NCBI GenBank assembly: GCA_043228905.1
Contig: JBHGNT010000001.1
Location: forward strand, 9,858,001 to 9,922,000
Reading direction: 5' to 3'
Source: Azolla caroliniana
Lineage: Eukaryota; Plantae; Polypodiophyta
Length of the DNA: 64,000 bases
The notes below the pieces were generated by a model that was not told where the DNA came from, searched no databases, and was given only the letters and a program-made list of their open reading frames with translations. How positions within the stretch are numbered: the first letter of the stretch is position 1; every line of letters begins with the position of its first letter. Position numbers and translations under genes: made by a program. Below are positions 544 through 42,474 of the stretch, piece after piece.

Positions 544-3500
544 GTTCCAGCTTATTCAGAAGTTTTGGGGAAATCACATGTGTACGTATCTGAAAAGACA
601 AGTCAAGCACCTGAGAATACGATTGCTACACTGATCGAGTGGAAGTATGGAGGATCAAATGTTTGTGTCGAAGGATCTTGGGATGATTGGAGTTCAAGGT
701 ACATTACATAATGAGTTTTGCTTTAGAAAACTTGTTTGCAGCTCTACTTATGGGATCTCTTGATCTATGCATCAGAATTCCATTACAAAAGTCAGGAAAG
801 GTCTTCACAATTGTCAAGATTCTCGTTGAAGGAGTGTACCATTATAGATTTGTGGTTGATGGAGAATTGAGACATGCACCAGAGTTGCCATATATATTTG
901 ACAATAAAGGAAAAGCCATGAATGTCCTTGACATACAGGTAATTTCGTAATAATTTAAGTAAGAGATAAATAGGAATTCCAAGTAACGTTTGTCTTTCTT
1001 GATCCATAATAAGATGATATGGTTTGATCAATTTGCAACTTGAAGGTTTTTGATGGTACCATGATTTACTACAATTTAAAAAATGGTGTATTTCTTGTTT
1101 TTTCATTGTCAGTACCCTATCATGCACGTTTGCTCATTTTCATTGTCATCTCTACCTTGCAGCTTTAGGGGTTTGAACCTTAATAAATCACAGGACCAAG
1201 GTTTGAAAAATTACGCCATGGGCTCCATTAGTGCATTCTGTTGACCAAGGTTTCAAAATTTACGCCATGCACTCTATTAGTGCATTCTGTTAAAACTCTG
1301 GTTCCTTGAAACATGCACTAACGTTGTATGGTTTTGAAAGTACCAGGGAATCCCATGAAAAAAGGAAAGTTGCCAACTTTAATTTCTTGAGATTTCTGCT
1401 AAAGCCCGTTACAACCACTTGGGGAGTCTACATCTTTGTCTACTCAGTATCAGGTCTTCTAATTGTAGGTGCAGTTGGTAATGTTAATGTGTGCAACATT
1501 CAGCACTGTCCTATCTATTTGTTATTTCTAGGACAGACATTTTTTATATGCATGAAGCCCATCATGGATTTCTGCTAAAGCCCGTTACAACCACTTGGGG
1601 AGTCTACATCTTTGTCTACTCAGTATCAGGTCTTCTAATTGTAGGTGCAGTTGGTAATGTTAATGTGTGCAACATTCAGCACTGTCCTATCTATTTGTTA
1701 TTTCTAGGACAGACATTTTTTATATGCATGAAGCCCGACATCTAAGTGTAGGCTACAGTTGGTTTCTTAATAAGAGTCTTTCTCCCCCTTAGTGCTCCAG
1801 GAGCCTTTCACCATGGCAGGATCTTTGTTATTCTTGTTACTCATCGCATGATCAATACCCCACATCTTCAGTTATTGATAAAAAGTCTCACCATCATGGA
1901 GTGGAGTAGGTAATCCTGAAGCCCTATATCTTTGTCTACTTGGTTTGTTGCACTGTATTGGGGGCGTGTTCAGCAATCTTAGATGATGTAACATCATCAA
2001 TATATCCTTTCTGCTTCATCCTTTGTTTGGGCAACCAAGTACTATGTATTATGCATCTCTGACATTTAAGTGTAGGCCGTAGATATCATGTACACCATGC
2101 TGTTTTTGCACTATCAAGATCAATTCTTTCACATCTTCAGTTCGTTATAAAAATTCTATTTCTCCTTCTTAGTGTTCAGGTGCTCCTTGGAGCTCTGCAC
2201 TATTGTGGGATCTTTGCTCTTTTCATTATTCATCTCATATTCAGTTCTCCTGTATCTTCAGTTCCCCTGTATCTTTAGTTCCTCATATGTGGTCTATTCC
2301 TCCTCGTTAGTGCTCCAGGAGCCTTCCACCAGGACAGGATGGGCCTTCATAATCTTAATTGGTGTGGCATTGATCATTATGTTCACTCTCTTCATATGCT
2401 ACTACATTAAATGTGTCGATACTTAAGGATGGGCTAGTCATTGGGTTCAAATTATGGAACATTATGGTTTCTTGCTGTCCCGAATTATGATCTTCTAAAG
2501 TGTATATTCTTGAATACACTGACAAGTCATGTGAGATTGTCTTTTGATGTCTGTCTACCCTGTAGCTTTTGTGTTCTGCCTACCTAACGACTTTTGGTGT
2601 TTTTGCTGACTCAATGTTGCTCCTATAAATAGGCCCGCCTTTCCTTCAATCATCTACTCTTTTAGTTCATTCAGCAAGGGTGGTTGGTAAGCCCTAGTAG
2701 ATTAGGATAACCAAATAGTCTATAGATAGTAAGTTTGGCGTTATGTTTTCAAATAGTCTTGAGCAAGATGATACTCATCAGTATTGGGGATCAAGAGGCC
2801 AACATATCACTGAAGTTGTACATTCAGCAGGAAGAGAAGCAAGAAAACTAAGAGGGGAATATGTCATCAGTACCTTGAAACAAGGGATGATTCTTTGCCC
2901 AGTTATGCGCTTTGTCATAATGTAGGATATTACAGCTATGTTAGATAGAAGCAAAGGTCGAATTTCCTGATAGATGATGAGGTGAAAGGCAGGTTTGTGT
3001 CAAGGAAGATCCCAAGTACCTAGGAGATCCTCAGTCTCTAGAATGTTTTTGTTAAAAATGTCCTCAGAAACTGAGATCAAGGTGCCAGGTAGGTTTCATC
3101 CAAGAACTTACAGAAAAAACTGTTTGGTGAGCCATTCTAATCGAACAATATGAAATATTTAGATTGAAGATAGTTGCAATGTGGCAGAGATGTTCGTCTA
3201 AATATTCCCTTTAGCATCTCTCATACTGCCAATGTTTTTAAGGTGTTTATGATAGTCTGGATTCTGTGATTAACAGCGATATTCATTTCTCAAGAGTGGA
3301 CATGTCAAAATAGTGCAGCATAGCATTTTATGAGCATGGCTGATGTTCTGATTTGGATAGCCTCAATATTATTTCTCAAAGAATGTATAGTAATGGGCAC
3401 CGCCAATATCCAATCTGGATAGACCCAATATTATTTGTCAATGAAAGTATAGTGGATGCCATCTGTATCATATATGGTGCTGTCTTGACGTATCTAAAAG

Positions 3501-6654: not shown

Positions 6655-8609
6655 TCATTGCAACTGAAGATCAAAATGGTACACTCCTGCAGAAATAAAA
6701 CCAAGAACCATAATATGAGTATACATCACTCATCTCCGGTAGACATAAATTAGCAAAACAGGCTGTGGAACTTACCATGTCCTTTGCCCACTCTTCTGAG
6801 CTGAGAAACATATCCTGCGATCTTCTTTATATCCTCCACCTGGGACACCACATTTTTTGTTACTTAGATAGATTTTGACTGGTAAAATCACATCTTAATA
6901 CATTCCATAGTTTGCAACCTAGCCAAACGCTATTAGTTCCATACATACCTGGGGCTTCAGAAACTCTCCTTCCACAAAATCACTCAATTGCGCATCACCA
7001 GCCTCTTCGGCAACCTTCAATAAAGTAACACACATATTATGTGAGTTTTCTAAACAACTTCATCTAACCGCAACAGTTGGCACGTCCAAGATATATGGAG
7101 TTGAGAATACACTTACCTTATGAAGGTGAAGCAATTTCTCGTTCACAAGCTTCTCCATTGCTAAGGTAAGCTCCATGGCTAGAAAAACATTGTAAAGGGT
7201 AAAGAAAGTAGGCATTAATAGATCAAAAGGAACCACAAAGAGAGATATTTGTAAGAGATACAAGATATATACGATGAGAAAGTCAAAACAAAAACATTCT
7301 AAGAGACACATTGAATATGGATCCTTATATACAGTTAGAAGAGACAAAGAAAGATCATTGTAGAGGAGACGAGAAACATGGATCTTTACACAATTAGATG
7401 CGAGAAACAACAATCTTGTAAAGGACACAAGAAATATGGATCTTTACACAATTAGATGCGAGAAAGAAAGATCTTTGTAAAGAAGACAAGTATGGATCCT
7501 TATACAATGATACATACCATAGAGGGCATCTCCCTTCTCTTCGTCATCAAACTCGGTCTGCGATGGACTGCATATAGACTGGAGTTTCACCTTGCCTCCC
7601 CTCATGTTCTGGGAAACAAAATCAGAAATACACTCTCATAAGCCTTATTTATTGTTATTATCCTATGACTGCACATATAATTTAGGGAGCTTTTTGTAAC
7701 CCGGTGGTAGAAATGAAGTAAAGTAGAGGGAATTGATTTCAGCAACTCACTTGATACTTCATGAGCTTCTCAGCATGCTCCCTTTCTTCATCACTGGATT
7801 CCTTGAAGAACCTGCAAAAGAAGATTCTCAGTCCCTCGAAATTAAATTAAACACATACGATTTGAGGCATGTTTAACATTAATGCTAGAGAATTGACAAG
7901 GATATGAAGCGCCTGATTACTTGGCAAATCCCGGCAGGCCCACATTATCTCGGTCAAAATAGGCGAACAAAGTATGGTAGAAGTAGGACGCACTGTACTC
8001 AATACTGCAAAGCACATCAACGACATCCAAAATGTTAAAAATACTGCAAACCATATCAGCATTATTAAACACATACAAACAAAACGCAGATCCACTCCAT
8101 CACATTCATAATCTAGCTCGCATAAATTTTTATGTTAAAATAGTTCAGTGCGGATGTACATAAATCGTGTAAAAATGAGGTGAAACCTCAAGGGGATTGG
8201 CTTTGGAAAACAACCACAAACAAGAAAACCAGTAAAAGATGAGGCATGCTTACTTGATCTGCTCATTGACAGCGGCCTCACTGGCCTCCGCATAGGCATG
8301 TCGAGCCAAAGACACGGAGCTGGAGGGGGAGACCTTAACAAGCTGCTCCTGGACCTCGAGGAAGGGCTCGAAGAGGACGCCAGTGAGGGTGGCATCGGGC
8401 AAGTCAGCAGAAGCGGCGATGCGCAGGGAGGAGGAAGACGAAGGGGGGGTCAGGCGAAGAAGCGGAAGCGAAAACGAGGAGGAGGAGGAGGAGGAGGAGG
8501 AGGAGGAGTGGAGGCGTGCAGCAGAAGCAGCAGCGCCTCGAAGGAGGGGCGGGTGAGAGCAAAAGCTGTGCTGAGCCATGGAGGAGGAGGAGGCCTTCGC
8601 AAGAAGCAT
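6655..8609 (-). CDS. FER: Plastid ferritin, 8 exons
   Basis: Exons 8609-8254, 8004-7921, 7811-7751, 7608-7518, 7178-7117, 7014-6949, 6839-6776 and 6686-6655. Ser-rich transit peptide, extension peptide ([12 protein letters not shown]), [57 protein letters not shown]. Seven-intron layout typical of plant ferritins. Confidence 0.97.
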
Positions 8610-8618
8610 ACTGGATGG

Positions 8619-8648
8619 TTAGGGTTAGGGTTAGGGTTAGGGTTAGGG
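8619..8648 (+). repeat. (TTAGGG)5 telomere-like array in the predicted ferritin 5' UTR
   Basis: Five perfect TTAGGG units, starting 10 nt upstream of the ferritin ATG (8607-8609) and downstream of the TATA box. Confidence 0.9.
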
Positions 8649-8740
8649 TTAGAGGAGGAGGAGGAAAGGGGGATTAGGGTTTGCAAGAGATGGAGAAGGA
8701 AAGCAGAAGGGAGGTGAGGATTAGGGTTAGGCACGCGCCT

Positions 8741-8858: not shown

Positions 8859-11433
8859 GGGAGCGTGTGTGGTGTGTGCGCGCCTCCGGAAAGAGAAAGC
8901 GCTTTTTCTTTCTTTCTTGCCGCTCCCCCCCCCCCCCCCCCCTTCCTCCCTTCCTTCCTTCCTCCTCCTCCACTAAAAAATATCTCCTCTTCTCAACGCA
9001 TCCACACACTTATTGCTTCTTCGTCCGGATTACCCACCCATCCTGCATTCACACTTGTGGCCTTCAGAAAATCGTCGCTCCCGGGTTTTAGAATTTCTCT
9101 AGATAAAGACATGGGCCCATATTAGATGATGGACATCGTGTTGATCTCTATAGCGATTACCCTCTGTACAGCGTAGGAAATAAGGGCTTCATAGGAGAAG
9201 AAAAAAACTTAACGCACGTAATAATATATAACATTCCAAAAAACAACTCTTTTGTCGGTCAGAGTTTGTTCGTGTTTCCATCAAAGACCTGTTGTTATCC
9301 TTCATGTGTGAGTCCACTAATACATTTTACCGCACCAGTCCATCCATCATTGTAAAGATATTTACCAACTCTCGTACGTACGCACACATGTAAAAGTTGT
9401 GTACATTTATTTAAACAACTATGAGAATCCCAAAAACCATGTTGCCCCTACTACAATAGTGCGCATTGGTATGGCAAAGTGAACCCTTTTTTAATGTCAT
9501 AAAATTAGATTATATGTAAACATTCAACACCACCATCAAACATTCTTGACATTCGTAATATATGTTACATATTCATCACCTACCAAGGTCTATGTTCAAT
9601 CAACAACTTATCAGTGATGTCATTGGTGTGCACAATTATCTTTTTTTTGCTATCAAATAAGTTAATAACCAATCTCTCTACCTTCAACTACCACTAAATC
9701 TAGGATAGGTGCTAGAAGAATGTACAAAATTGATCATGATTCCCTAATTTGATCATGACCAAGAGGTATATGAAAACTAATTCTTGTAGTTCCGAATGCT
9801 AGAATCCACTCGTGTGGCACTACAATAAAAAATTCCAGAACATTATGTTAGCATGTATATGACCGAGCACTAACAATATAGTACCCCATCCAAAGTTATC
9901 AAAAAGGGTGGATGAATTATATGTTGTTAAATTACCATGGAATCAAAGGCCATGCTTTGTTCTTGAAGAAGGCCAATTGATCAATCACTGCCTTATGGAC
10001 GCCCACCGTGAGTTAGTAGACATGACTAGTGCAAACTATGTAACGATCTTAGGATGCAACCCTCAAAGCGAGATAGGAGATGAGCAACGGGGTGTGAACA
10101 AAACAACAAAGCAAGAGGAATGTAAGACAAAGCTATGATTCAACTTCAAGATTGATGTTGATTTTGTTGAGATCAACTAGGATGAAGCCCCTTCTTTCCT
10201 CACCGTGCAAATCAAACTGCTAAACTAGAGTATGAGGTTGAACTTATGTTAACACTCCAATATTTTAGTGGTGGCCAAAATTGGCAACCTACCCAAAATT
10301 TTGTCAATACTATGGCTCTTAGAACAAACTTTAATCTTTGATAATCCTTATAAACTAGGTTTTAATTCAAGCATTGTAGCTTGGAACTAGTTGTTGAAAA
10401 AGGGGAATATGATGGTGGAGCATAAATGTCATACATCATCACTTGGGGGGTCTTGAATCCTAACTTCCTCATCATAAATCATTGCAACATTTTATACGTA
10501 GCATTGTAACAATTCAAATGACAATATATTGTAGTTTTGTACAACAAATAGTTATTGTCGTATTTCATGTGATAGTCAAGTGGTGAACATGCTTGCCATT
10601 GGTCAAGTGGTGAATGTGCTAGGTGGCAAGCATCTACATAGCTAGAAATATCATGTTTAGGGAAATTCCAATGCTGACAACATATTCAAATTTAACACAA
10701 CTCTTTGGCTATCACATTGGAAATTGTCATTGTACTATTATTCTTCGTATACATATATCAACAAAGAGTCCTTCCTTTTCTTAATTAACATTGTTTTTGG
10801 ATGTGGGGTGGGTTTATAGGTGTTGCAAATATTAAAAGAATTTGTTTACACTTTTTTTTTCGTAAGCTCATGCACGTTATTGCTTTGATCTTGAAAACTA
10901 GCTTCATGACATTGACATTTACCATTACGATAAGACCAACATGGCACAAGTCAAATTATGAAATTACCACCATGCATCCTTCCTTAGACTAGCACTTGTT
11001 TAGAAATGCCAAATTGAGACACAAACCATACAAGTTCACAATTATGGCCATATAATTCCATAATTCGAAACAGGTCCACAACAATAGGTATTGAATCCAT
11101 CGTTGAAAGTATTTGCAAGTTCGTACCAAGACGAAATCATGGCATTACCAAATGAGTTTGGTTCTCAATTAGTAAATTCCTCACATGCTCCCTTCTTCAC
11201 ACGAGAGTGGTGATAGGAAGTATTGTTTTTTTTCCGAATATGTCCTTGAAAGTCTTATCAATCTATCTAATTCAGCACTTCGCTTGTGCATTGGATGGAC
11301 ACCGGGACAATTTGGCGTCAGCATAACTCATTGTGTGTCCAGATCATCTAAGCAATCAACTAATTCTAGGCCTACTAGTACTAACTTGGTTTATTGGGAA
11401 TGTACACATACATACATACATACATACATACAT

Positions 11434-11547
11434 CGTGGTGTCTAACTACTACCAAATATTAAAGAGGCCAAGTGAGGGAATCGCGGAGAGGGACGGTGCA
11501 GGTCGCACCGCTGATGGCGCGTTCGATCTCCACCGTCCAAGATGGAT
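11434..11547 (+). repeat. Left TIR of the MULE
   Basis: Reverse complement of 17230-17345 apart from a few mismatches; the outer 8 bp are imperfect. Confidence 0.93.
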
Positions 11548-11579
11548 GTGGAATAGGCGCGAAAAAGCGCGCCACGTAA

Positions 11580-11905
11580 AAAGGGAGCCCGGCTCATACA
11601 AAATGGAGCCCGACTCATTAAAGAAGGGCTCCACTTTGTGAAAGGGAGCCCTTCTCATTCATGTTCAGGGAAGTATAAAAACCCATTCAGGCAAAATGGA
11701 GCCCGACTCATTAAAGAAGGGCTCCACTTTGTGAAAGGGAGCCCTTCTCATTCATGTTCAGGGAAGTATAAAAACCCATTCAGGCAAAATGGAGCCCGAC
11801 TCATTAAAGAAGGGCTCCCTTGGAGCCCGACTCATTAAAGAATGGCTCCATTTTGTCAAAAGGGAGCCCTTCTCATTCATGTTCAAGGAAGTATAAAAAC
11901 CCATT
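11580..11905 (+). repeat. Left subterminal repeats (GGAGCCCGACTC motif; 93 bp tandem unit)
   Basis: Motif at ~11583, 11605, 11698, 11791 and 11822. The 93 bp duplication is visible as the repeated 31-aa block in ORF 11638. Confidence 0.85.
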
Positions 11906-12121
11906 TTTTGTCATTTTTTGTCATTCGTGGGTTTGAGGGTTTAGGGTTTTTGAGCGAGGCGCACCACCTGTCTGCGATCACTCGTTGCAAACATCTCCGG
12001 TGAGGCACTGCGAGCACCTGCAGTCCAGAGGTAGGCATCATATTCCTTCTATTAGGTTTTGGTTTTTATTAGGTATCATATTCTTTCTATTAGGTTTAGG
12101 GTTGCTTCTAATAGGTACCAT

Positions 12122-12895
12122 AAATGTGTGTATGATTAAATACATGTATGTGTGTATGATTCAATACATTTCTGTGTGTGTATGATTGAATACATTTGTG
12201 TGTGTGATGGGTTTAGGGTTACATGTATGTGTGTATTTAAGATCTTCTTTGGGCTGTGAATGTGTGTGTTTGTTGTATGATTGAATACATTTATTTGGGA
12301 ATGTGTGTGTATACATGTGTATGATTGAATACATTTCTGTGTGTGTATGATTGAATACATGTATGTGTGTATGATTGAATACATTTGTGTGTGTGATGGT
12401 TGAATACATGTATGTGTGTATGATTGAATACATTTGTGTGTGTGATGGTTGAATACATGTATGTGTGTATTTAAGATCTTCTTTGGGCTGTGAATGTGTG
12501 TGTTTGTTGTATGATTGAATACATTTATTTGGGAATGTGTGTGTATACATGTGTATGATTGAATACATTTCTGTGTGTGTATGATTGAATACATTTGTGT
12601 GTGTGATGGTTGAATACATGTATGTGTGTATTTAAGATCTTCTTTGGGCTGTGAATGTGTGTGTTTGTTGTATGATGAATACATTTATTTGGGAATGTGT
12701 GTGTATACATGTGTATGATTGAATACATGTATTTGTGTATTTTAGATCTTCCATGGGCTGCGAATGTGTGTGCATGTGTATGATTGAATACATGTTTGTG
12801 TGTATTTAAGATCTTCTATAGGCTGTGATTTAATACATGTATGTGTGCATTTAAGATCTCCCATGGGCTGTGTATGATTGAATACATGTATGATT
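12122..12895. repeat. Higher-order satellite built on TGATTGAATACAT plus TG-rich linkers, inside the MULE
   Basis: Many copies of (TG)nTATGATTGAATACAT interleaved with TTAAGATCTTCTTTGGGCTGTGAATGTGTG blocks. Confidence 0.9.
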
Positions 12896-13095
12896 TTGAT
12901 TTTGCCAACATTTGAATGTCATTTAAATGCCAACATTTGAATGCTTGAATTTGCCCATGTGATTCATGCATTATTGGGCTCTTTTTTATGCCCACATTTG
13001 AATGTCAAATCTAAAATCTTGTATACATTCTTTGCGTTTTTTCTCCCTAAATAATAGTAATGTAATGAATGCCTTTCTAAAAATGTTTTGTACAG

Positions 13096-15017
13096 ATGGC
13101 TAGTCGGTCCAAGATCTTCATAGACTTTGATGCAGATTGGGGTGAAACAATACCCTATGAAGGGAGGTATGGCATGAATCATTTCTCTACTTTATATTGT
13201 GTATAAATAATAATGTTTGTGTGCTAACTTGAATGTTGGTTTAGGGTTTATGTAAGAAAGGGTGTTAGGTGCCCCAAATCCAATGATACGGAGGCTGAAA
13301 ACATCATTACTCAAGACTCGAGCATGGATACGAACCCCATGCATGACGTGGGTCCAGGTGTTGAAGATATCAAAGTAAATGGTGAGTTTATGTCCATTCT
13401 TATAATCATTATTGATGTAAGCATATTTTGGGTTTTTCTAATGCAAATGTGACACCATTGTTGTAGTGGACCCTATGTCCCTCTTCAAGTGTGGAAGAGA
13501 CTCAACAGGTATCAAATGTCGCACCTGTATTGTGGGAGATTCGTGTAGAAAAGAGGGGAGATGGTTTCGAAAAAAAGCGGACATGGAGGCCCATTTACAG
13601 AAGGCACATGGCATCCATGTAATACTGCCTCGGGGGCTAAAGATAGACGAAGAAGAGCAATCGACCTCCATGAGGAGTACAGCCACATCATTCTTCAGCG
13701 AATACGAAAGACAACGATCAATAAATCGTTTTTTGGATCCGGAGCTCAAGTATAATAGATCACGCCAATCACACATGAGGAAGTTGAGGACAAGAGCAAT
13801 AAAAATCTTCAAAGCCACTCCGGACTCACTTCGAACATGCAAGGAGGCTGATTTCATTGCTCAATTCGTTAGCCAACAAATGGCCAGGTATGACGAGGGA
13901 AAGGAGCATAGGATGGCAAAAGTGAGGTTGAAGATTGCGGATGCGTCTAAAGATTATGTAAGTATGGTTTATGATTTTGTGTGCATCTTATGTGAGTTTA
14001 AAACTTATGATTATGTGTGAATCTTATGTATGAATTGTAGTGTAAGAGTCATGGAATTCCCATACCAAAGGATGAGGCACATGTCGAGATCGATGGTGGT
14101 CAAGACCAACTGTCAGAATCGACAATGCAACAAGCAAGGAGGCCGAAAATCCAAATCCGCAGGAAAGAAGTGGACCCATGTAATTCGGAGTTCATTACAT
14201 CATCAGACACAGATGAGGATGCAGACATTGGGATTGTCTTTGTTGGTCCAGGGACAATCTCGAAAACATGGGATAACTCTGCAAGAAATAAGTTCACCAG
14301 GTATGTTGTTATGCTGGGGGCATGATATCAATAGTTAACATCATGTTTGTTTAGTAGTTACTAATCTAGCCTAATAAACAGGTATCAGGTGGCATGCCGA
14401 CGACTGGATGTAGCGGTCTTCTTGTCGGAGATACAATTATGTTCGTTGATCACAGTAGGGGAGATGGCATCCACATGGATGATAACCCTCTTCCTGAAAG
14501 ACGTACTCACTCGTGTTCCTGAAAGGGATTATGTCTTCATTCCAATATTGAACGCAGGGCATTGGGTGCTTTGGTTGAAGATGCGACAAACTCCTACGGG
14601 TCTCGATGCCAAGGTGAGGAGCCCAATTATATTTTGTGATCCACTAAATATTCATCCGACTACCAGGGTGCGGACATTGGGTGATTTGGCTATACGACAT
14701 ATCTCGAGTCGGACACATGACCATTGCATCATCAACAACGGGCAATTCCATGAATTGCGTATCCCAACCCAACCTAATTGGACCGATTGTGGGTATTACG
14801 TGATGCAAACAATTCGCATGTTGGTCGAGGAGTTGATTCAAGGATTTGAGTCCGATCAATTTGTAAGTATTTATGAGATTTGAATTTGAGCATTTGTTTT
14901 TGTTTTTGTTGATGGCATCTTCAATTGTAGGGTAAGGAGCAATGGTTTGGATTCGAAGACGTGGAGCTCCTTCGGAAAATCATGGCAAAATGGGCACGAA
15001 GGACTTTGGGCATATGA
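13096..15017 (+). CDS. Transposon-borne C2H2-like zinc finger + Ulp1-like (peptidase C48) protease, 6 coding exons, 508 aa
   Basis: Exons 13096-13166, 13245-13381, 13467-13957, 14041-14300, 14382-14862 and 14931-15017 total 1527 nt, all GT-AG, in frame, with no internal stop. Finger: CIVGDSCRKEGRWFRKKADMEAHLQKAH. Protease motifs: FIPILNAGHWVL, IIFCDPL, PTQPNWTDCGYYV, F..EDVELLRK. Confidence 0.85.
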
Positions 15018-15039
15018 CTACGTGGAGTCATTTTGCAAT

Positions 15040-15395
15040 GGTTGTATATGACTCAATGTAAATCATTTTGGTTGTATATGAATCTCATTTTGGTTGTAGA
15101 TGACTCAATGTAAATCATTTTGGTTGTATATGACTCAATGTAAATCATTTTGGTTGTATATGAATCTCATCTTGGTTGAATATGAATCAATTTTTGAATC
15201 TCATTTTGGTTGTATATGAATCTCATCTTGGTTGAATATGAATCAATTTTTGAATCTCATTTTGGTTGTATATGAATCTCATCTTGGTTGAATATGAATC
15301 AATTTTTGAATCGCATTTTGGTTGTATATGAATCTCATTTTGGTTGTGTATGAATCTCATTTTGGTTGTATATGAAAATCATTTTGGTTGTATAT
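15040..15395. repeat. ~22 bp-unit tandem array (CATTTTGGTTGTATATGAATCT) just after the ULP gene stop
   Basis: More than a dozen degenerate copies are visible. Confidence 0.9.
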
Positions 15396-15536
15396 TGGAA
15401 TTGTTTTGGGTGTCAAAAGAATAAGACTAATAGCTTATTGACAAGTAGTGAAGGCAATGGTTTTTGAGAAAGGCCAATAAAGAGTAAGTATATAGAAAGA
15501 GTGCTTCGGTCCTTACGTAAAGAATACATAGTAAGA

Positions 15537-15756
15537 CATAATGTCAATCCATTTCAAAGACATAATAAGACTCAATGTCAATCCAATTCAAAGACATAAT
15601 AAGACTCAATGTCATTCCATTTCAAAGACATAAATAAGATTCAATGTCAATCCATTTCAAAGACATAAATAAGACTCAATGTCAATCCATTTCAAAGACA
15701 TAAATAAGACTCAATGTCAATCCATTTCAAAGACATAATAAGACTCAATGTCAATC
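15537..15756. repeat. 33-34 bp tandem array (AATGTCAATCCATTTCAAAGACATAA[A]TAAGACTC), ~6.5 copies
   Basis: Head-to-tail near-identical units directly abut the truncated transposase. Confidence 0.9.
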
Positions 15757-15786
15757 TTATGACTAAGGTTAAAAATCGGGAGTGCC

Positions 15787-16875
15787 ATGACTAAGGTTGA
15801 TTGGGCTTTGATCTTGCATCATGCCTATGCACTCCGAGATCTTGGGAAAGTGGCACATGTTCAACCCTACCTGCATGGTGAACCAGGATCTCCCGCCATA
15901 CAACCATTTATCTTGATACTTCAAGATCAATGGATGTTGGAAATGTGTGAGCGGTTGACCCTAAACAACTCTTGGGCAATCGACTCGACATTTAAAACAA
16001 ACCAATTTGGGCTACCATTATATGCTGCAGTTGCCCCCAATGCCATGGGAATTGGGATCCCATTATGGTACATGCTTTGTAGTTCTGATAAGGGGTCAAA
16101 CCATGAGCAAGTGGCATTAGAAACTTGTTTGAGAGTCATATTCGCAAGGATGCCCACGGTGAGGCCAAATGCGATAGTGATCGATAAATGTTGGACGTCA
16201 TATAATGCCATAACTAATGTGGTTGCAACAGACCGTCAATCTTGGATTGTTGTAAATGGGCAACGGTCCCAAACACATTTGTGGTTTGACATGTGTGTGG
16301 AGGAAACTTTGGCCCAAGTTTGGTAGAATGTTCAACTATGGACATGTTGACACTACCAATATTGTGGAAAGACATTGGCAGTTTATCAAGTATACTGCCT
16401 TGAGGGGAAGAATAAACCGATCAATTACCGACCTTCTACATGTCTTAATCGGGGACAGTGAAACTGGCACTTGCATAGGAGGAACGGTAATAGAGTGGTA
16501 CAAGCAACGACAAGAAATATGTGAGAGTGGTCGGTTTGCACCTCGTGCGAATTGTAGGGATCAAAGGTCTCGACTTAAAGAAGCAGAGAGAATATTGGAA
16601 AGGTATGTCGAAAATAGACATCTCGCAAGAACTTATTGGCAACAACAATAGACATCTCGCAAGAACTTATTGGCAGCTCCCCAAACACTTCCAAATCCCA
16701 CTCCGGAAAATTACAAAGAGGTGCTAGTCGGGCTAGGAGGAGATTGCCATTGGTTGACCATGAGAAGGTTCGGTGTTTGCGTTGCAATGGCTTGACCTTG
16801 ACTTCAAGGGACTCAAATGTTACATGTTGTAAAAATTGTGGTTGCATCTTGCAATCATCCCGACATGAGCCATAA
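15787..16875 (+). pseudogene. MULE transposase remnant (5'-truncated, internally deleted, frameshifted)
   Basis: WAIDSTFKTNQFGLPL (first D) and RPNAIVIDK (second D) share a frame; after a frameshift near 16280 comes DTTNIVERHWQFIKY (E). The expected CxxH segment and SWIM finger are absent. A CxxC...CxxC tail lies in ORF 16636-16875, and there is a 33 bp-period duplication at ~16613-16675. Confidence 0.85.
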
Positions 16876-17039
16876 TCTTAATATGTATATTTCAATTTAG
16901 GGTTGTCAACATCTGACATTTTAATATTTTATGTAAGACTTGTTATTTGAACCTTTACGTTTTTTTGAGAAATTTTATGGTCAGTTTCATGGAAAATATT
17001 TGTTGTACACTTACAATTTTGTGGAGTTTTTGATGTTTG

Positions 17040-17215
17040 TTGCTACAGAGTCGGGCTCCTTCTTACTAATGTGATCTGACAGCGGGGCTCCTTCTGACAG
17101 AGTCGGGCTCCCTCTTGCATAGGCTGTTTGACAGCGGGGCTCCTTTTTGACAGAGTCGGGCTCCCTGTGGCAGAGTCGGGCTCCTTTTCGTAGAGTCGGG
17201 CTCCTTCTGACAGAC
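17040..17215 (-). repeat. Right subterminal repeats (GAGTCGGGCTCC, the inverse of the left motif)
   Basis: Copies at ~17048, 17100, 17153, 17173 and 17193, plus GCGGGGCTCC variants. Confidence 0.85.
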
Positions 17216-17229
17216 GTTGTCAGCTTTTT

Positions 17230-17345
17230 ATCCATCTTGGACGGTGGAGATCGAACGTGCCATCAGCGATGTGACCTGCACCGTCCCTCTCCGCGATTCC
17301 CTCACTTGCCCTCTTTAATATTTTTGGTAGCAGTTAGTCACGAGC
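17230..17345 (-). repeat. Right TIR of the MULE
   Basis: Reverse complement of 11434-11547. Confidence 0.93.
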
Positions 17346-17482
17346 TACATACATACATACATGCATGCATCCATCCACATAAACATGGGCATAGATTTGT
17401 AATTTGCAGGTTGCGTTCTGTTCTCTGTATAAATATCTGTAGCCGTCTTGATTTCTTGTCTGACGCTGACTGGGGCCTGGCT

Positions 17483-19491
17483 ATGGCTTCTTCTCCTTCT
17501 CCCAAGAACAGGGTTTCTGTCGGAGGTACGGATCGCGACGGCCACGTAGCTCATTTGAAGCAGAGGCCCCTGACATGGAATGCGGAGGAGGACGACGATC
17601 CGGACGAAGAGATCCCCCCTCTGTTCCTGGGATTCAACCAGGACAGCACCCGCCTGGCGTGCGGCACAGAAAGAGGCTTCCGGGTCTACGAGTTATGTGG
17701 AGGCCCCATCCGAGAGTATGCGAAATTTGAGAGCAGCCGAGGTAGAGGCGGAGGAGGGATTGGAAGAGTGGAGCTCATGTATGATCGCGGCTTCGCAGCC
17801 CTTGTCGGGGGAGGGACCCTCCCTGCATACCCTCCTCACAAGGTCATGATGTGGGACTTCAGCCAGGGCCGGTGCACGGGTGAGCTCTGCTTCAAGTCTC
17901 CTGTCCGCTCCGTCAAGCTGCGAATGGACAAACTGATCGTGCTTCTGGAACTCAAGGTCTTCGTGTATGACTTCGAAACTCTGGGCCTCCTCTTCTCGGC
18001 AGAAACCCTGCCGAATCCCAAGGGCCTCTGTGCTCTCTCAGCTGCTACTTCTTCCCCCTTTGTTTTTGCTTGCCCAGGAATGTGCAAGGGCGAGGTTCGA
18101 GTGGAGCAGCTTCGGCCACGGAAGCTCGAGAAGAAGATGACCAGGGATACCACCATGATTGCTGCACATGATTCACATCTTGCGTGCATTGCTCTCAGTG
18201 TCGACGGGCGCCTCCTTGCCACTGCGAGCAACAAGGGAACCCTTATTAGGATCTTTAGCACATTCGATGGCACTCATCTTCAAGAGGTATATGTTTCTTC
18301 CCTCTGTATCCCTGCAAGGCACGAAGTCTGTGTGGAAACTCTCAATGGGCTAGTGTGGTAGGAGATGGTCTCACCATTGATGTGAAGGCAAACTTTTTAT
18401 AAGTTATGTAACCAGAAAAGTAAAGCATTATTAGGGAGCCAAAACCTATGCCTGAAAGAGGGTAAGTTGAAATGCAAGAATTAAGTGTCTCATGTATAGT
18501 TTGTGGTATTGAGATGGAGCAAATGTGACCTTCAGGGTATTGATTGTCTATGATAGGGAAAGGAGCCATTTGGTCTATATCTTGAAGTGCAAGAAGCTGG
18601 AATATTAAGTCAACACTATTCCTTGAATGAAGTTGCAGAGTACTGTATCTGAAAATTTAGTGTACATTTGTGGTGCATGTTTGGTCAAACATATGGATAT
18701 GGTAAACATTTGGAACTCATAATAGAGGACTTGGAACCCTGTAGGCTAATTTGCTAAACCGGTTTGATATATCATCATGGACTGTCACCTATCGACACCT
18801 AGCAATTTTATTCAGGCACATACATGATGTTTCTATTGAAAGTAGATAAGACACTGAATTTGATCGGTTTCTTTTCCTTCCCAGCTTCGCCGAGGTGCCG
18901 AAAGGGCGGAAATCTACAGCATTGCTTTTTCTTGGAATGCATATTGGTTAGCTGTTTCGAGTGACAAGGGTACTGTCCATGTATTTGGTCTCCATTATGA
19001 GAACACTCAGACCAATGGCAAAAATGTAGCTGCAGCACTGATGAATGCTAATCCCGGATCCTCATTGTCATTTATAAAAGGTTAGTTATGGCATTTTATA
19101 TAGGTTTCTGTATTTTTTATGAATGCGTAACTAGATCAACATGACTAATCATCTTCATTTTTGTTTTTGCAGGTGTACTACCCAAATATTTTAGTTCAGA
19201 ATGGTCGTTTTCTCAGTTTAGGCTTCCTGAGGAAATCAAATCGATTGTAGCATTTGGAACTGAAAAGCATTGTCTTTATATTGTAGGTTCTGATGGCAGG
19301 TAAAATGCTGGTTTCCTTGTCTCGGTAATATTGATGCTTTGTGTGGTTGCCTGATTTTGGAGCTAAATCATGGCATGTGTGTATTTCCAATATGTAGCTT
19401 CTACAAGTGTGTCTTTGACCCTGTGAATGGCGGAGAGATGGTGCCGAAGGAGTACGTACGATTTCTGAAGCTTGGGAATGAGATACGATGA
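17483..19491 (+). CDS. ATG18: Autophagy-related protein 18 (PROPPIN/WIPI WD40), ATG18a-like
   Basis: Exons 17483-18286, 18885-19080, 19173-19299 and 19398-19491. Motifs: FNQDSTRLACGT, NPKGLCALS, IAAHDSHLAC, LATASNKGTLIRIF, the QE|LRRG phosphoinositide motif, SSDKGTVHVF, LPKYFSSEWSFSQF. Confidence 0.95.
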
Positions 19492-39442: not shown

Positions 39443-40740
39443 TTCTTTATTTGCCAACATTCAACCACGGTTAAAATCTTGAAGCTTCAATGTATAGCCT
39501 GTTTTACCAGGGGTCTTATTATCACAATAGTCTCTTCCAAGTGTTGTATGATGACATTATTTTTTCAAATGAGGAAACAACTCCCCCCAAATGCCCGGTC
39601 AAGTCCCCCCTCCCGAGGGAAGCTGGGAGAAAGCTTTTTTTTATATAGGCATTTGATGTCCTTGTGAACCCCTTCTTATGCATCAGTCATGTAAAAAGAA
39701 ATATATACAAACCGTTTTATAACAGCACTTCATTTCCCTTAAACATGTTTGTGGAAAGTAACATTCACAGTTCCCATTGTTAATTATCTATACCAATATC
39801 AATTATAGCAAATGTGTTTCTTCAATTCAAAGAACAGTAGTTAATTTCTCACAAGTTCATCAATGCTCTAACTCTACTTTGGCATGAACAATTCTAATTC
39901 TAAAACTTGGTACCCAACAAATGAGGGTAGATAAGACAATATATACGCACATAATCAACACCTTGACTATATTACTTAGTCAAGTACGAGGAATCCAAAC
40001 TTATGTTTGTTTCCACTGATAGAATATATTAGATCTAAAACAAAATGTGGAAGCATTGCCTTTACACATAATTTTGGAGACTGTTGACGTTTATTGATAA
40101 TAGAATCAGTTGCATTAGTAAAAAGCTAAAGGTGAAATATGTAAATATGATGATGTGGTGGTAGACCTTGCGTTGTGCAAGATTAAATTTGCATCTTTGA
40201 TGTTCCATTTGCTATGAAAACTCCTCATAAACTTTGTTTGAGATCATAAAAACTAATATTGAAACTAATATCCTTAAGACAAAGGGTGAAATTGAAGACA
40301 CTTCCCTTTTTAACAATGCAAGGATTGTCTTCCATCGAAAACAATACCCCCTTTTTTTTATTATTGGAAATGCCCACATACGGTCTCCTAGTCAAACATG
40401 GGTCTTAAGCATGACAACATTAAATGTGTCTTCAGTCAAAGAAGTTCTTTACTTTTAGATTGATTCAGGAGTTTCTCTGTATTATGTGTGTGTGTAGTGT
40501 CTCTAACACGAACATAAAATAGAGGTGGTCCGTGTGAAGACCATACCTAGCTAGGGATGGAAGTAGTGGGAAGTCTTAGTTAGGCATGACTTTCCCTTGA
40601 CTTTTTCCTTCTTTATTCTGTATACATATTACATATGTACATACATACATACATACATAGTGAAAGAATGAGAAGGAAGGAAGAGGTCAAGTCAAGAGAG
40701 AGTAGAGTGGTGGAAGACTCTGAGCTGAGGACCCCGAGCT

Positions 40741-42474
40741 ATGGCGGTGGCCCCCGAGCTGCCGCCACGATGCCCTCCTCCTCCTGCCTTCACTCGACTC
40801 CGCCCCCCAAAACCCCCGCCTTTCTCCGCCTACGCCTCCGCCCTACGCCTCTGCTGCCACACCAAATCCCTCTCCCAAGGACGAATCGCGCACTCCCACC
40901 TCCTCAGAAGCTCCCGCGAGCAAGACCACTACCTCTCCAACCTTCTCCTGCTCTTATATGGTAGGTGTGGACCTGCTGTAGAGGATTCCTATGACGTTTT
41001 CTGCAGATCCCACCTTGTCCGGAATGTCTTCTCCTGGTCCATCATGATCCAATCCTTGATAGACCATGGCGACCATCAACGGGCCTTTGATATGTTCCAT
41101 CAAATGCATATGGAAGGTGTCATGCCAGACACCGCAACATTTGTCATCGTATTCTCTATGCTTCATGGTGATGGATGCCTCCAAGGCACAAGGATGCACA
41201 CGTGCCTTCTAAATTCTGGTCTCAAAATTAACGTGGTTATTGAGACTGCCCTGGTTGGCATGTATTGCAGATGTGGTAGCTTTGAGAAGGCCCGGAAAGT
41301 GTTCAATGCCATGACAGAACGGAATGTGGTGTCATGGACTACCCTCATTTCTGCCTATTCTCGTTCTGGCTATGGCCAGGATGCTCTCTTGCTCTTTCAA
41401 GAGATGCAGACTTCAGGTCTTGTTCCTAATGAGATCACTTATACTAGCCTTTTACATGCTTGTGCATGTGAACTGGCCCTTATGGAAGGCCGGCTTCTTC
41501 ATGCTTGTATTATTATGGAAGGAGGATTTAGAGGAGAGATCACCATGGACAATGCATTCATAGAAAAAGGCTTTGGAAGCAACATTGCAATGGATAATGC
41601 ACTTGTCACGATGTATTGTAAATGCTCGAGTTTGCAGGATGGATGGGCAATGTTCAGGACACAGATAGGCCGGGATGTTGTGTCATGGACAGCCATTCTG
41701 GCCTCGTGCGTGCACCATGGACGTTGCCGAGATGCATTTTGGCTTTTTAATCAAATGCAGATAGAAGGTCTTTTCCCAGATAGAGTAGCATTCATAAGCA
41801 TGCTCGATGCATGTGTTCTCGAAACTTCATTAACTGAGGGAAAGAGAATGCACCTCTATATCATCTCCTCTGCCATTTTTGTTGACGTTGTATTAGGGAC
41901 TGCACTTGTCTACATGTATGGGAAATGTGGAAAGTCACATGAAGCTGCTCAGGTGTTCAATAACATGGCCTGTCGCAACTCTGTGACCTGGAATGCTATG
42001 ATTGCTGGGCATGCTCAACAGGGAAAAGCTGAGAAGGCTTTGCATGTTTTTAATCAAATGTTGCTGGCTAATGTATCACCAGACATTGTAACTTTCTCAA
42101 GCATTTTATCTGTGTGTAACCATGCAGGTCTGGTTGAGGAAGGTTGTAAATATGCTCTGAAAATGTGTGAGCATTATAAGATTAGACCTTCAGTTGAACA
42201 CTATAATTGCTTGGTTGGGCTTCTTGGGCGTGTTGGGCTTATCAAAGCAGGAGAAACTCTAATAAGTTGCATGCCAATTCAACCTACCACAAGTTGTTGG
42301 GCTGCATTGTTCTCATCTTTGCAAACCCATGAGAATTTGGGCCAAGGAAAAGATGCTGCTGACCATCTGTTTGAATTGAACCCAGAAATAGAGTTACTGT
42401 GTATGGTGGCTCCAACACCTTGCACTTTTTTTGATGACCAACTCAACAACTGCTTCAGTTTGACAAGCATTTAG
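40741..42474 (+). CDS. PLS-class PPR protein ending in a partial E domain (no DYW)
   Basis: 577-aa intronless ORF with RNVVSWT, ALVxMYxKCG and TFSSILSVCNHAGLVEEG...EHYNCLVGLLGRVG motifs; the sequence diverges after HLFELNPE. Confidence 0.9.
   Translation: MAVAPELPPRCPPPPAFTRLRPPKPPPFSAYASALRLCCHTKSLSQGRIAHSHLLRSSREQDHYLSNLLLLLYGRCGPAVEDSYDVFCRSHLVRNVFSWSIMIQSLIDHGDHQRAFDMFHQMHMEGVMPDTATFVIVFSMLHGDGCLQGTRMHTCLLNSGLKINVVIETALVGMYCRCGSFEKARKVFNAMTERNVVSWTTLISAYSRSGYGQDALLLFQEMQTSGLVPNEITYTSLLHACACELALMEGRLLHACIIMEGGFRGEITMDNAFIEKGFGSNIAMDNALVTMYCKCSSLQDGWAMFRTQIGRDVVSWTAILASCVHHGRCRDAFWLFNQMQIEGLFPDRVAFISMLDACVLETSLTEGKRMHLYIISSAIFVDVVLGTALVYMYGKCGKSHEAAQVFNNMACRNSVTWNAMIAGHAQQGKAEKALHVFNQMLLANVSPDIVTFSSILSVCNHAGLVEEGCKYALKMCEHYKIRPSVEHYNCLVGLLGRVGLIKAGETLISCMPIQPTTSCWAALFSSLQTHENLGQGKDAADHLFELNPEIELLCMVAPTPCTFFDDQLNNCFSLTSI

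Follow-up and report, generated by a model that had tools for sequence, protein, structure and literature searches.

A Ulp1-carrying Mutator-like element family of a fern that probably integrates preferentially into pre-existing (TACA)n microsatellites

The window considered here, a stretch of 64,000 nucleotides from the fern Azolla caroliniana (contig JBHGNT010000001.1, positions 9,858,001 to 9,922,000 of the forward strand), contains at 11434-17345 a 5,912-nt Mutator-like element (MULE), which is bordered by inverted repeats and seated between two halves of a (TACA)n microsatellite upstream of an ATG18-like gene. The element, its relatives, and a related site that lacks it are best read together, and it is considered likely that they represent a young fern MULE family with a preference for integrating into (TACA)n/(TGTA)n microsatellites that were already in place. 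The features on which this reading depends, together with their immediate surroundings, are listed below by window position (TIR, terminal inverted repeat; ORF, open reading frame; PPR, pentatricopeptide repeat).

11406-11433, plus strand: left half of the split target microsatellite, (ACAT)7, running directly into the left terminus
11434-11547, plus strand: left TIR, with the family-conserved terminus CGTGGTGTCTAAC
11584-11833, minus strand: left subterminal cluster of five GAGTCGGGCTCC motifs, one mismatched, within a 93-nt tandem repeat
12124-12892, plus strand: internal 24/49-nt satellite rich in TACATGTATGTGTGTA, present only in the subfamily of the window element
14389-14883, plus strand: ORF for a Ulp1/SUMO-protease (Peptidase_C48; PF02902, E=5.7e-08)
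15787-16651, plus strand: transposase remnant, with the MULE domain in ORF 15787-16326 and another frame at 16256-16651
17048-17204, plus strand: right subterminal cluster, with a motif count of five GAGTCGGGCTCC
17230-17345, minus strand: right TIR, with the family-conserved terminus GCTCGTGACTAAC (reverse complement)
17346-17374, plus strand: right half of the split microsatellite, (TACA)4 T and then GCATGCATCCATCC, beginning directly after the right terminus
17483-18358, plus strand: first exon of an ATG18/PROPPIN WD40 gene (PF21032, PROPPIN)
40638-40659, plus strand: unoccupied (TACA)5.5 tract, followed at a distance of 82 nt by a 577-aa PPR ORF (40741-42474)

The core arms of the TIRs (11454-11547 and 17230-17323) are 94 nt long and 96% complementary, and a 29-mer from this core is confined to the two arms in the 64-kb window. 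Followed out to the termini, the TIRs measure 114 nt (11434-11547) and 116 nt (17230-17345), match in 105 of 116 aligned columns, and are as long as Mutator TIRs are expected to be (about 100 nt or more). A CTAAC motif occupies 11442-11446 and is matched on the right by its complement, GTTAG (17333-17337). The original prediction, made from the sequence of the window, had placed both ends eight "imperfect" bases outside this motif; the distance is indeed the same at both ends, but these outermost 8 nt (left, CGTGGTGT; right, GCTCGTGA, given as the reverse complement) are not degenerate and instead constitute conserved, end-specific termini. Further inside, GAGTCGGGCTCC has 10 matches in the window where 0.05 would be expected, all of them within the element, five near each end and inverted between the ends; the motifs of the left cluster are probably transposase-binding sites. 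The assignment to the Mutator-like elements and the claim that the element carries genes were both borne out by Pfam domains, namely MULE (PF10551) in ORF 15787-16326 (E=2.1e-09, 38.1 bits against a cut-off of 27.6) and the Peptidase_C48 domain, whose presence inside the element is the mark of Ulp1-carrying (KI-type) MULEs. The Ulp1 ORF forms part of an accessory gene spanning roughly 13100-15000, and the region 13084-14494 is 89-93% conserved in five related copies (L011, L014, L021, L022, and L023). At 16279/16280 the window copy is short of 212, 188, and 66 nt relative to L001, L002, and L012, respectively, and the reading frame switches at this point. The transposase of the window copy thus looks disabled, and because it is short and frame-broken, the copy is probably non-autonomous.

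Both TIRs run straight into in-phase repeats, as had been claimed for them, with (ACAT)7 directly adjoining the left terminus and (TACA)4.25 (17346-17362, decaying into GCATGCATCCATCC) directly adjoining the right. The same 9-mer, TACATACAT, touches each end (11425-11433 and 17346-17354), again in agreement with the original prediction, and its two occurrences are candidate copies of a target site duplication (TSD) of the length usual for Mutator elements, 8-11 bp and typically 9 bp; as the repeat makes the length ambiguous, TSD lengths of 5, 9, 13, or 17 all fit the flanks. The two half-tracts lie on the same strand and are hence direct repeats rather than outward continuations of the TIRs. 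In the entire 64-kb window, ACAT-type tracts of at least four units number only three, and because two of these adjoin the element, the match between its flanks is not a matter of chance.

A related empty site, L024, was found via the neighboring ATG18/PROPPIN gene. It matches the window at 11120-11433 (81%) and 17350-18365 (92.7%), and the two flank matches are joined by one continuous microsatellite of ~130 nt, composed of ACAT, (CCAT)5, ~16 ACAT units, and GCAT variants, in which no element is present. The boundaries of the tract are common to the window and L024 (on the left AATGTAC followed by ACAT, and on the right GCATGCAT...ACATAAACATGG), while its length is ~130 nt in L024 against ~59 nt for the two halves in the window together. 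Because L024 carries a continuous tract without the element, the tract pre-exists and is not borne by the element; the possibility, raised with the original prediction, that the tracts would be missing from an empty site is thereby answered at this one locus, where the empty site carries the microsatellite as is seen for known microsatellite-targeting MULEs. The divergence of L024 (7-19%) far exceeds that among the ends of the family, so that the empty state is ancestral, and because the first 130 nt of the window element are 100% identical to those at five other loci, the element is younger than the divergence of L024. L025, considered as a deeper orthologue of the ATG18 site, begins inside the exon, and the upstream region falls outside its contig. 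The right flank of the window insertion (17348-17375, CATACATACATACATGCATGCATCCATC) is also 86% complementary to an internal-satellite unit at 12395-12422. Derivation of this flank from the family's own satellite was rejected on account of its native occurrence at L024, and the likeness is judged to be a coincidence of low-complexity purine/pyrimidine sequence.

Other copies were sampled by searching public metagenome assemblies with a TIR-internal 21-mer, which yielded 21 contigs, 20 of them family members from ENA assemblies and one, L019, an unrelated chance bacterial match that was excluded. Since the 21-mer lies 47 nt inside the element, the flanks of the recovered copies are unselected. 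After L005 was merged with L021 and L008 with L016, and one contig with a 3-nt flank was dropped, 19 distinct ends remained; the window's own locus is not among these contigs, whose interiors are collinear with the window element and include deletion derivatives. The left ends of L004, L007, L009, L014, and L021 are 100% identical to that of the window over 130 nt, and those of L005 and L017 match at 100% over the 74 nt that the contigs hold; given such identity across loci, the family is young. The left terminus reads CGTGGTGTCTAAC, or CGACGTGTCTAAC in a second subfamily, and the right terminus GCTCGTGACTAAC, with outer 8 nt of CGTGGTGT (variant CGACGTGT) on the left and GCTCGTGA on the right, and because these end-specific termini are conserved across the family, the borders drawn at 11434 and 17345 are correct. 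Two protein-level searches were less productive: an ORF lying in the left TIR, used as a query for the ends of other copies, gave no match, and the transposase ORF returned only short contigs, none reaching an element end. In L012 (~3432-3440, minus strand), a partial extra terminus, GCTCGTG, stands directly outside the real terminus GCTCATGACTAAC and beside a TGTA tract; either a small duplication or an excision footprint, with the element later re-inserted at that site, could account for it.

The family-wide association with the repeat is pronounced. With a near-perfect tract defined as one in which at least 18 of the 24 adjacent nucleotides match perfect (ACAT)n or (ATGT)n, such tracts adjoin 11 of the 19 distinct ends, against a background of near-perfect 24-mers of 0.16% elsewhere in the window and 0.66% in the outer flanks of the contigs (binomial P of 1e-26 to 7e-20). 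Degenerate ACAT-, GT-, or ACAC/RY-type sequence (R, purine; Y, pyrimidine) adjoins five further ends (L011, L012, L015, L018, and L022), and the remaining three (L004, L010, and L023), whose partner ends were not recovered, lie in ordinary unique DNA. The flanks of other copies, which the original prediction proposed to inspect for randomness, are accordingly not random, with 16 of 19 ends at near-perfect or degenerate tracts, and its suggestion that the family targets (TACA)n is upheld as a preference that is strong but not absolute. Alternation of purine and pyrimidine is likewise high, at least 19 of 23 possible alternations being present in the flanks of 14 ends compared with 0.5% of the background. 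Microsatellites of the AG, ATC, AC, and other classes, which occur in the window and the flanks and are in some cases commoner in the window, adjoin no end, so the preference is for the ACAT class of repeat rather than for microsatellites generally; pure (TA)n, the usual target of known microsatellite-targeting MULEs, likewise adjoins none of the 19 ends, even as most sampled ends are, as in those families, microsatellite-flanked. The shortest flanking tract measures 11 nt and the longest more than 80 nt, many interruptions are present, and both terminal subfamilies (CGTGGTGT and CGACGTGT) are associated with such tracts. The neighbor of one and the same left terminus is (ACAT)n in L007 and (TGTA)n in both L005 and L017; in L009 it is a tract of 11 nt, and in L004 unique DNA. 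A tethering role for the internal TGTA-like satellite, which might have drawn the element to TACA, is not supported, as the second subfamily (L006, L016, and L022) and L011 lack such arrays and are nonetheless found in ACAT-type tracts. In L011 (3757-3850), two related MULEs stand end to end, the right terminus of one (...GACACGAGC) being separated from the left terminus of the other (CGTGGTGTC...) by just 29 nt of TACA-like sequence.

The junctions themselves show regularities. The repeat is strictly alternating in purine and pyrimidine, with A at every second position, and at all 12 left-type ends position -2 is A and position -1 a pyrimidine, a junction allowed by two of the repeat's four phases. 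Read along the plus strand of the element, the repeat is ACAT in 10 strong cases and ATGT in two (p=0.04). These phase and orientation patterns are suggestive only, the orientation bias being weak and the ends perhaps not independent. It is conceivable, and proposed here tentatively, that the transposition complex reads TACA in register and with strand polarity, integrating after an A-pyrimidine step with its plus strand on the ACAT strand; if true, no earlier member of the Mutator superfamily would be known to target a tetranucleotide microsatellite in a sequence-specific, oriented manner.

From the foregoing, we infer cut-and-paste transposition with a 9/10-bp TSD, in which the repeat would be recognized by the transposase complex. 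The family would comprise a zinc-finger/Ulp1 accessory gene and a MURA-type transposase, and the window copy, presumably moved in trans, would have interrupted a (TACA)n tract at its middle, within the promoter or 5' leader sequence of the ATG18-like gene. Integration would occur after an A-pyrimidine step, possibly in a preferred orientation, and duplication of ~9-10 nt of the repeat would leave a half-tract beside each terminus. Several points weigh against preferential integration into pre-existing tracts as so described. A Mutator-length TSD is compatible with the data rather than demonstrated, none of the sampled copies having both ends in unique DNA, and protein-DNA recognition of the repeat is a step that we only infer. 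L024 is not an allele but either an orthologue in a close relative or a homeologue. The 19 ends may represent as few as ~10 insertions, given that left and right ends recovered on separate contigs may stem from the same insertion. Finally, the contigs derive from metagenome assemblies and not from the source genome, and joins past a long microsatellite may be chimeric, a defect by which the adjacency of terminus and tract is unaffected.

Among the alternatives, one holds that the TACA tracts are part of the element ends or a one-off coincidence, a notion suggested solely by the contact of both ends with the repeat in the window and already refuted by the tract at L024, the direct rather than inverted arrangement of the half-tracts, the variation of tract length and orientation at identical termini (some copies having no tract at all), and a probability of at most 7e-20 for chance. 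A more substantial alternative locates the specificity in the tract instead of the transposase, such that (TACA)n, as fragile, nucleosome-free, or deformable DNA, would be a general landing pad for many transposon families. Alternating purine/pyrimidine DNA is unusually flexible, and the nearly perfect alternation in 14 of 19 flanks, (GT)n and ACAC/ATAT variants included, is what such a landing pad would lead one to expect; nevertheless, the second element stacked in L011 belongs to the same MULE group and not to another superfamily, integration is locked in phase, A-Y preceding the left terminus in 12 of 12 cases, and 8 of the 19 flanks consist of pure ACAT-type sequence, the (AT)n and (AC)n tracts of the background being essentially unused. 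This explanation is hence regarded as unlikely.

Two models devised for other microsatellite-associated families fare less well. The expansion model proposed for maize TAFT, as summarized in PMC5907723, would have a short TACA-like 6-10-mer as the target, the flanks then lengthening as the polymerase stutters while the staggered cut is repaired. The 11-nt tract of L009 and the finding that occupied MuTAnT sites have more TA units than empty ones (PMC4486113) speak for it, whereas at the ATG18 site the related empty tract (~130 nt) is longer than the occupied halves (~59 nt) and shares its boundaries with them, and the tracts at 100%-identical young termini are interrupted (GCAT, GGAT, TGTG) in the manner of old microsatellites, which makes expansion very unlikely here. 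In the model put forward for SaTar of guayule and rice, an excised circle with microsatellite filler between its termini enters the tract, here (TACA)n, by homologous recombination without a TSD (PMC5907723). Entry driven by homology predicts an orientation bias on the repeat strand such as the 10:2 ratio obtained, and the two elements end-to-end across the 29-nt tract in L011 are likewise in keeping with it. That bias is weak (p=0.04) and its ends may not be independent, however, and elements with identical termini are found in both orientations (L005 and L017 versus L007 and the window), the sequence on either side of the window element fits a simple 9-nt duplication, and three ends (L004, L010, and L023) lie in non-repeat DNA; entry by recombination is accordingly deemed extremely improbable. 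Preferential integration into pre-existing tracts therefore stays the favored account.

MULEs that insert into microsatellites are established in angiosperms, in agreement with the original prediction, and their targets are overwhelmingly (TA)n, as exemplified by MuTAnT, SaTar, and Ac-mMITE (PMC4486113, PMC5907723, PMC8449440). Micron of rice and TAFT of maize, known here by secondary citation, are earlier cases of the same strategy, being Mutator-related, microsatellite-flanked, and (TA)n-specific; the short targets of TAFT are said to expand on insertion, in contrast to the long tract already in place at the L024 empty site. The closest parallel is MuTAnT of Medicago truncatula, a MULE family with long TIRs and a putative autonomous, mudrA-carrying member, most copies of which reside in microsatellites of variable length and a minority elsewhere, with empty sites that carry the repeat and insertions that are often near genes (PMC4486113). 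MuTAnT differs in its host, in its target, a palindromic dinucleotide as opposed to the strand-asymmetric tetranucleotide (TACA)n, in its mostly short, MITE-like copies (MITE, miniature inverted-repeat transposable element) compared with the multi-kb, Ulp1-carrying copies sampled from the fern, and in its 9-nt TSD, which has been shown where that of the fern family is a candidate. SaTar (guayule, rice) and Ac-mMITE (pineapple) are also MULE-derived and are microsatellite-flanked in 62-95% of their copies, the remaining copies having 9/10-bp TSDs, and they stack end-to-end on one microsatellite without nesting, as the fern family does once, in L011; they are, however, small (0.4-1.7 kb), non-autonomous, and mostly (TA)n-directed (PMC5907723, PMC8449440). 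The SaTar paper mentions "diverse, non-TA" flanks and names no alternative specificity (PMC5907723), and neither "tetranucleotide" nor "TACA" appears as a target in the text of PMC5907723 or PMC8449440. No tetranucleotide-targeting MULE, and no microsatellite-targeting MULE in ferns, was found in the literature searched.

MULEs with an Ulp1 gene are represented by the Kaonashi/KI-MULE type of Arabidopsis and CUMULE of melon, which resemble the fern family in having a Peptidase_C48 (Ulp1-like) gene beside the transposase; to our knowledge, microsatellite targeting has not been reported for either. The fern family thus displays the defining behavior of the microsatellite-inserting group with an unusual target, a tetranucleotide, in a fern host and through full-length, Ulp1-carrying elements.

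As regards neighboring genes, the end of the element lies 137 nt from the ATG of the ATG18-like gene, and the original prediction's further example, a TACA tract before a PPR gene, was located at 40638-40659 as listed above. A family copy in L020 (775-962) is situated in a ~100-nt ACAT/GCAT tract that ends ~85 nt before a PPR start codon, with its terminus 188 nt from the ATG of this gene, whose product has a transit-peptide-like N-terminus. L020, which like the tract at 40638 precedes a PPR gene, was considered as an occupied version of that tract and dismissed, there being no nucleotide similarity between the two. A recognizable gene was not found in most other contig flanks, and the steering of insertions toward promoters is plausible on the strength of three cases (the ATG18 and PPR genes of the window and the PPR gene of L020). 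On the plus strand, a single ORF (17147-18361) begins within the right subterminal region of the element, crosses the right TIR and the TACA tract, and joins exon 1 of the ATG18-like gene without a change of frame, with 112 codons preceding the ATG of that gene. This read-through is probably coincidental. The ends of maize Mu promote outward transcription, and if the TIR of the fern element does likewise, a chimeric leader or an N-terminal extension of the ATG18-like product would be possible. Elsewhere in the window, (GAG)11 occupies 8476-8508 and is followed ~110 nt on by six perfect GGTTAG units (8617-8652), an interstitial telomere repeat of the TTAGGG type and not of the TTTAGGG type that is usual in plants.

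Microsatellite targeting by MULEs has been viewed as a "safe-haven" strategy, and the fern case indicates that the trait is old or has evolved repeatedly in the superfamily and that its specificity can change. As (TACA)n is not palindromic, the orientation and phase of insertions can be scored, which is impossible at (TA)n, and such scoring could separate models based on sequence recognition, DNA structure, and homologous recombination. In the few sites that could be judged (one ATG18 and two PPR genes), start codons follow the tracts at distances of 80-190 nt; were this placement general, insertion would spare the coding sequence and deposit outward-facing TIRs in promoters and 5' leaders.

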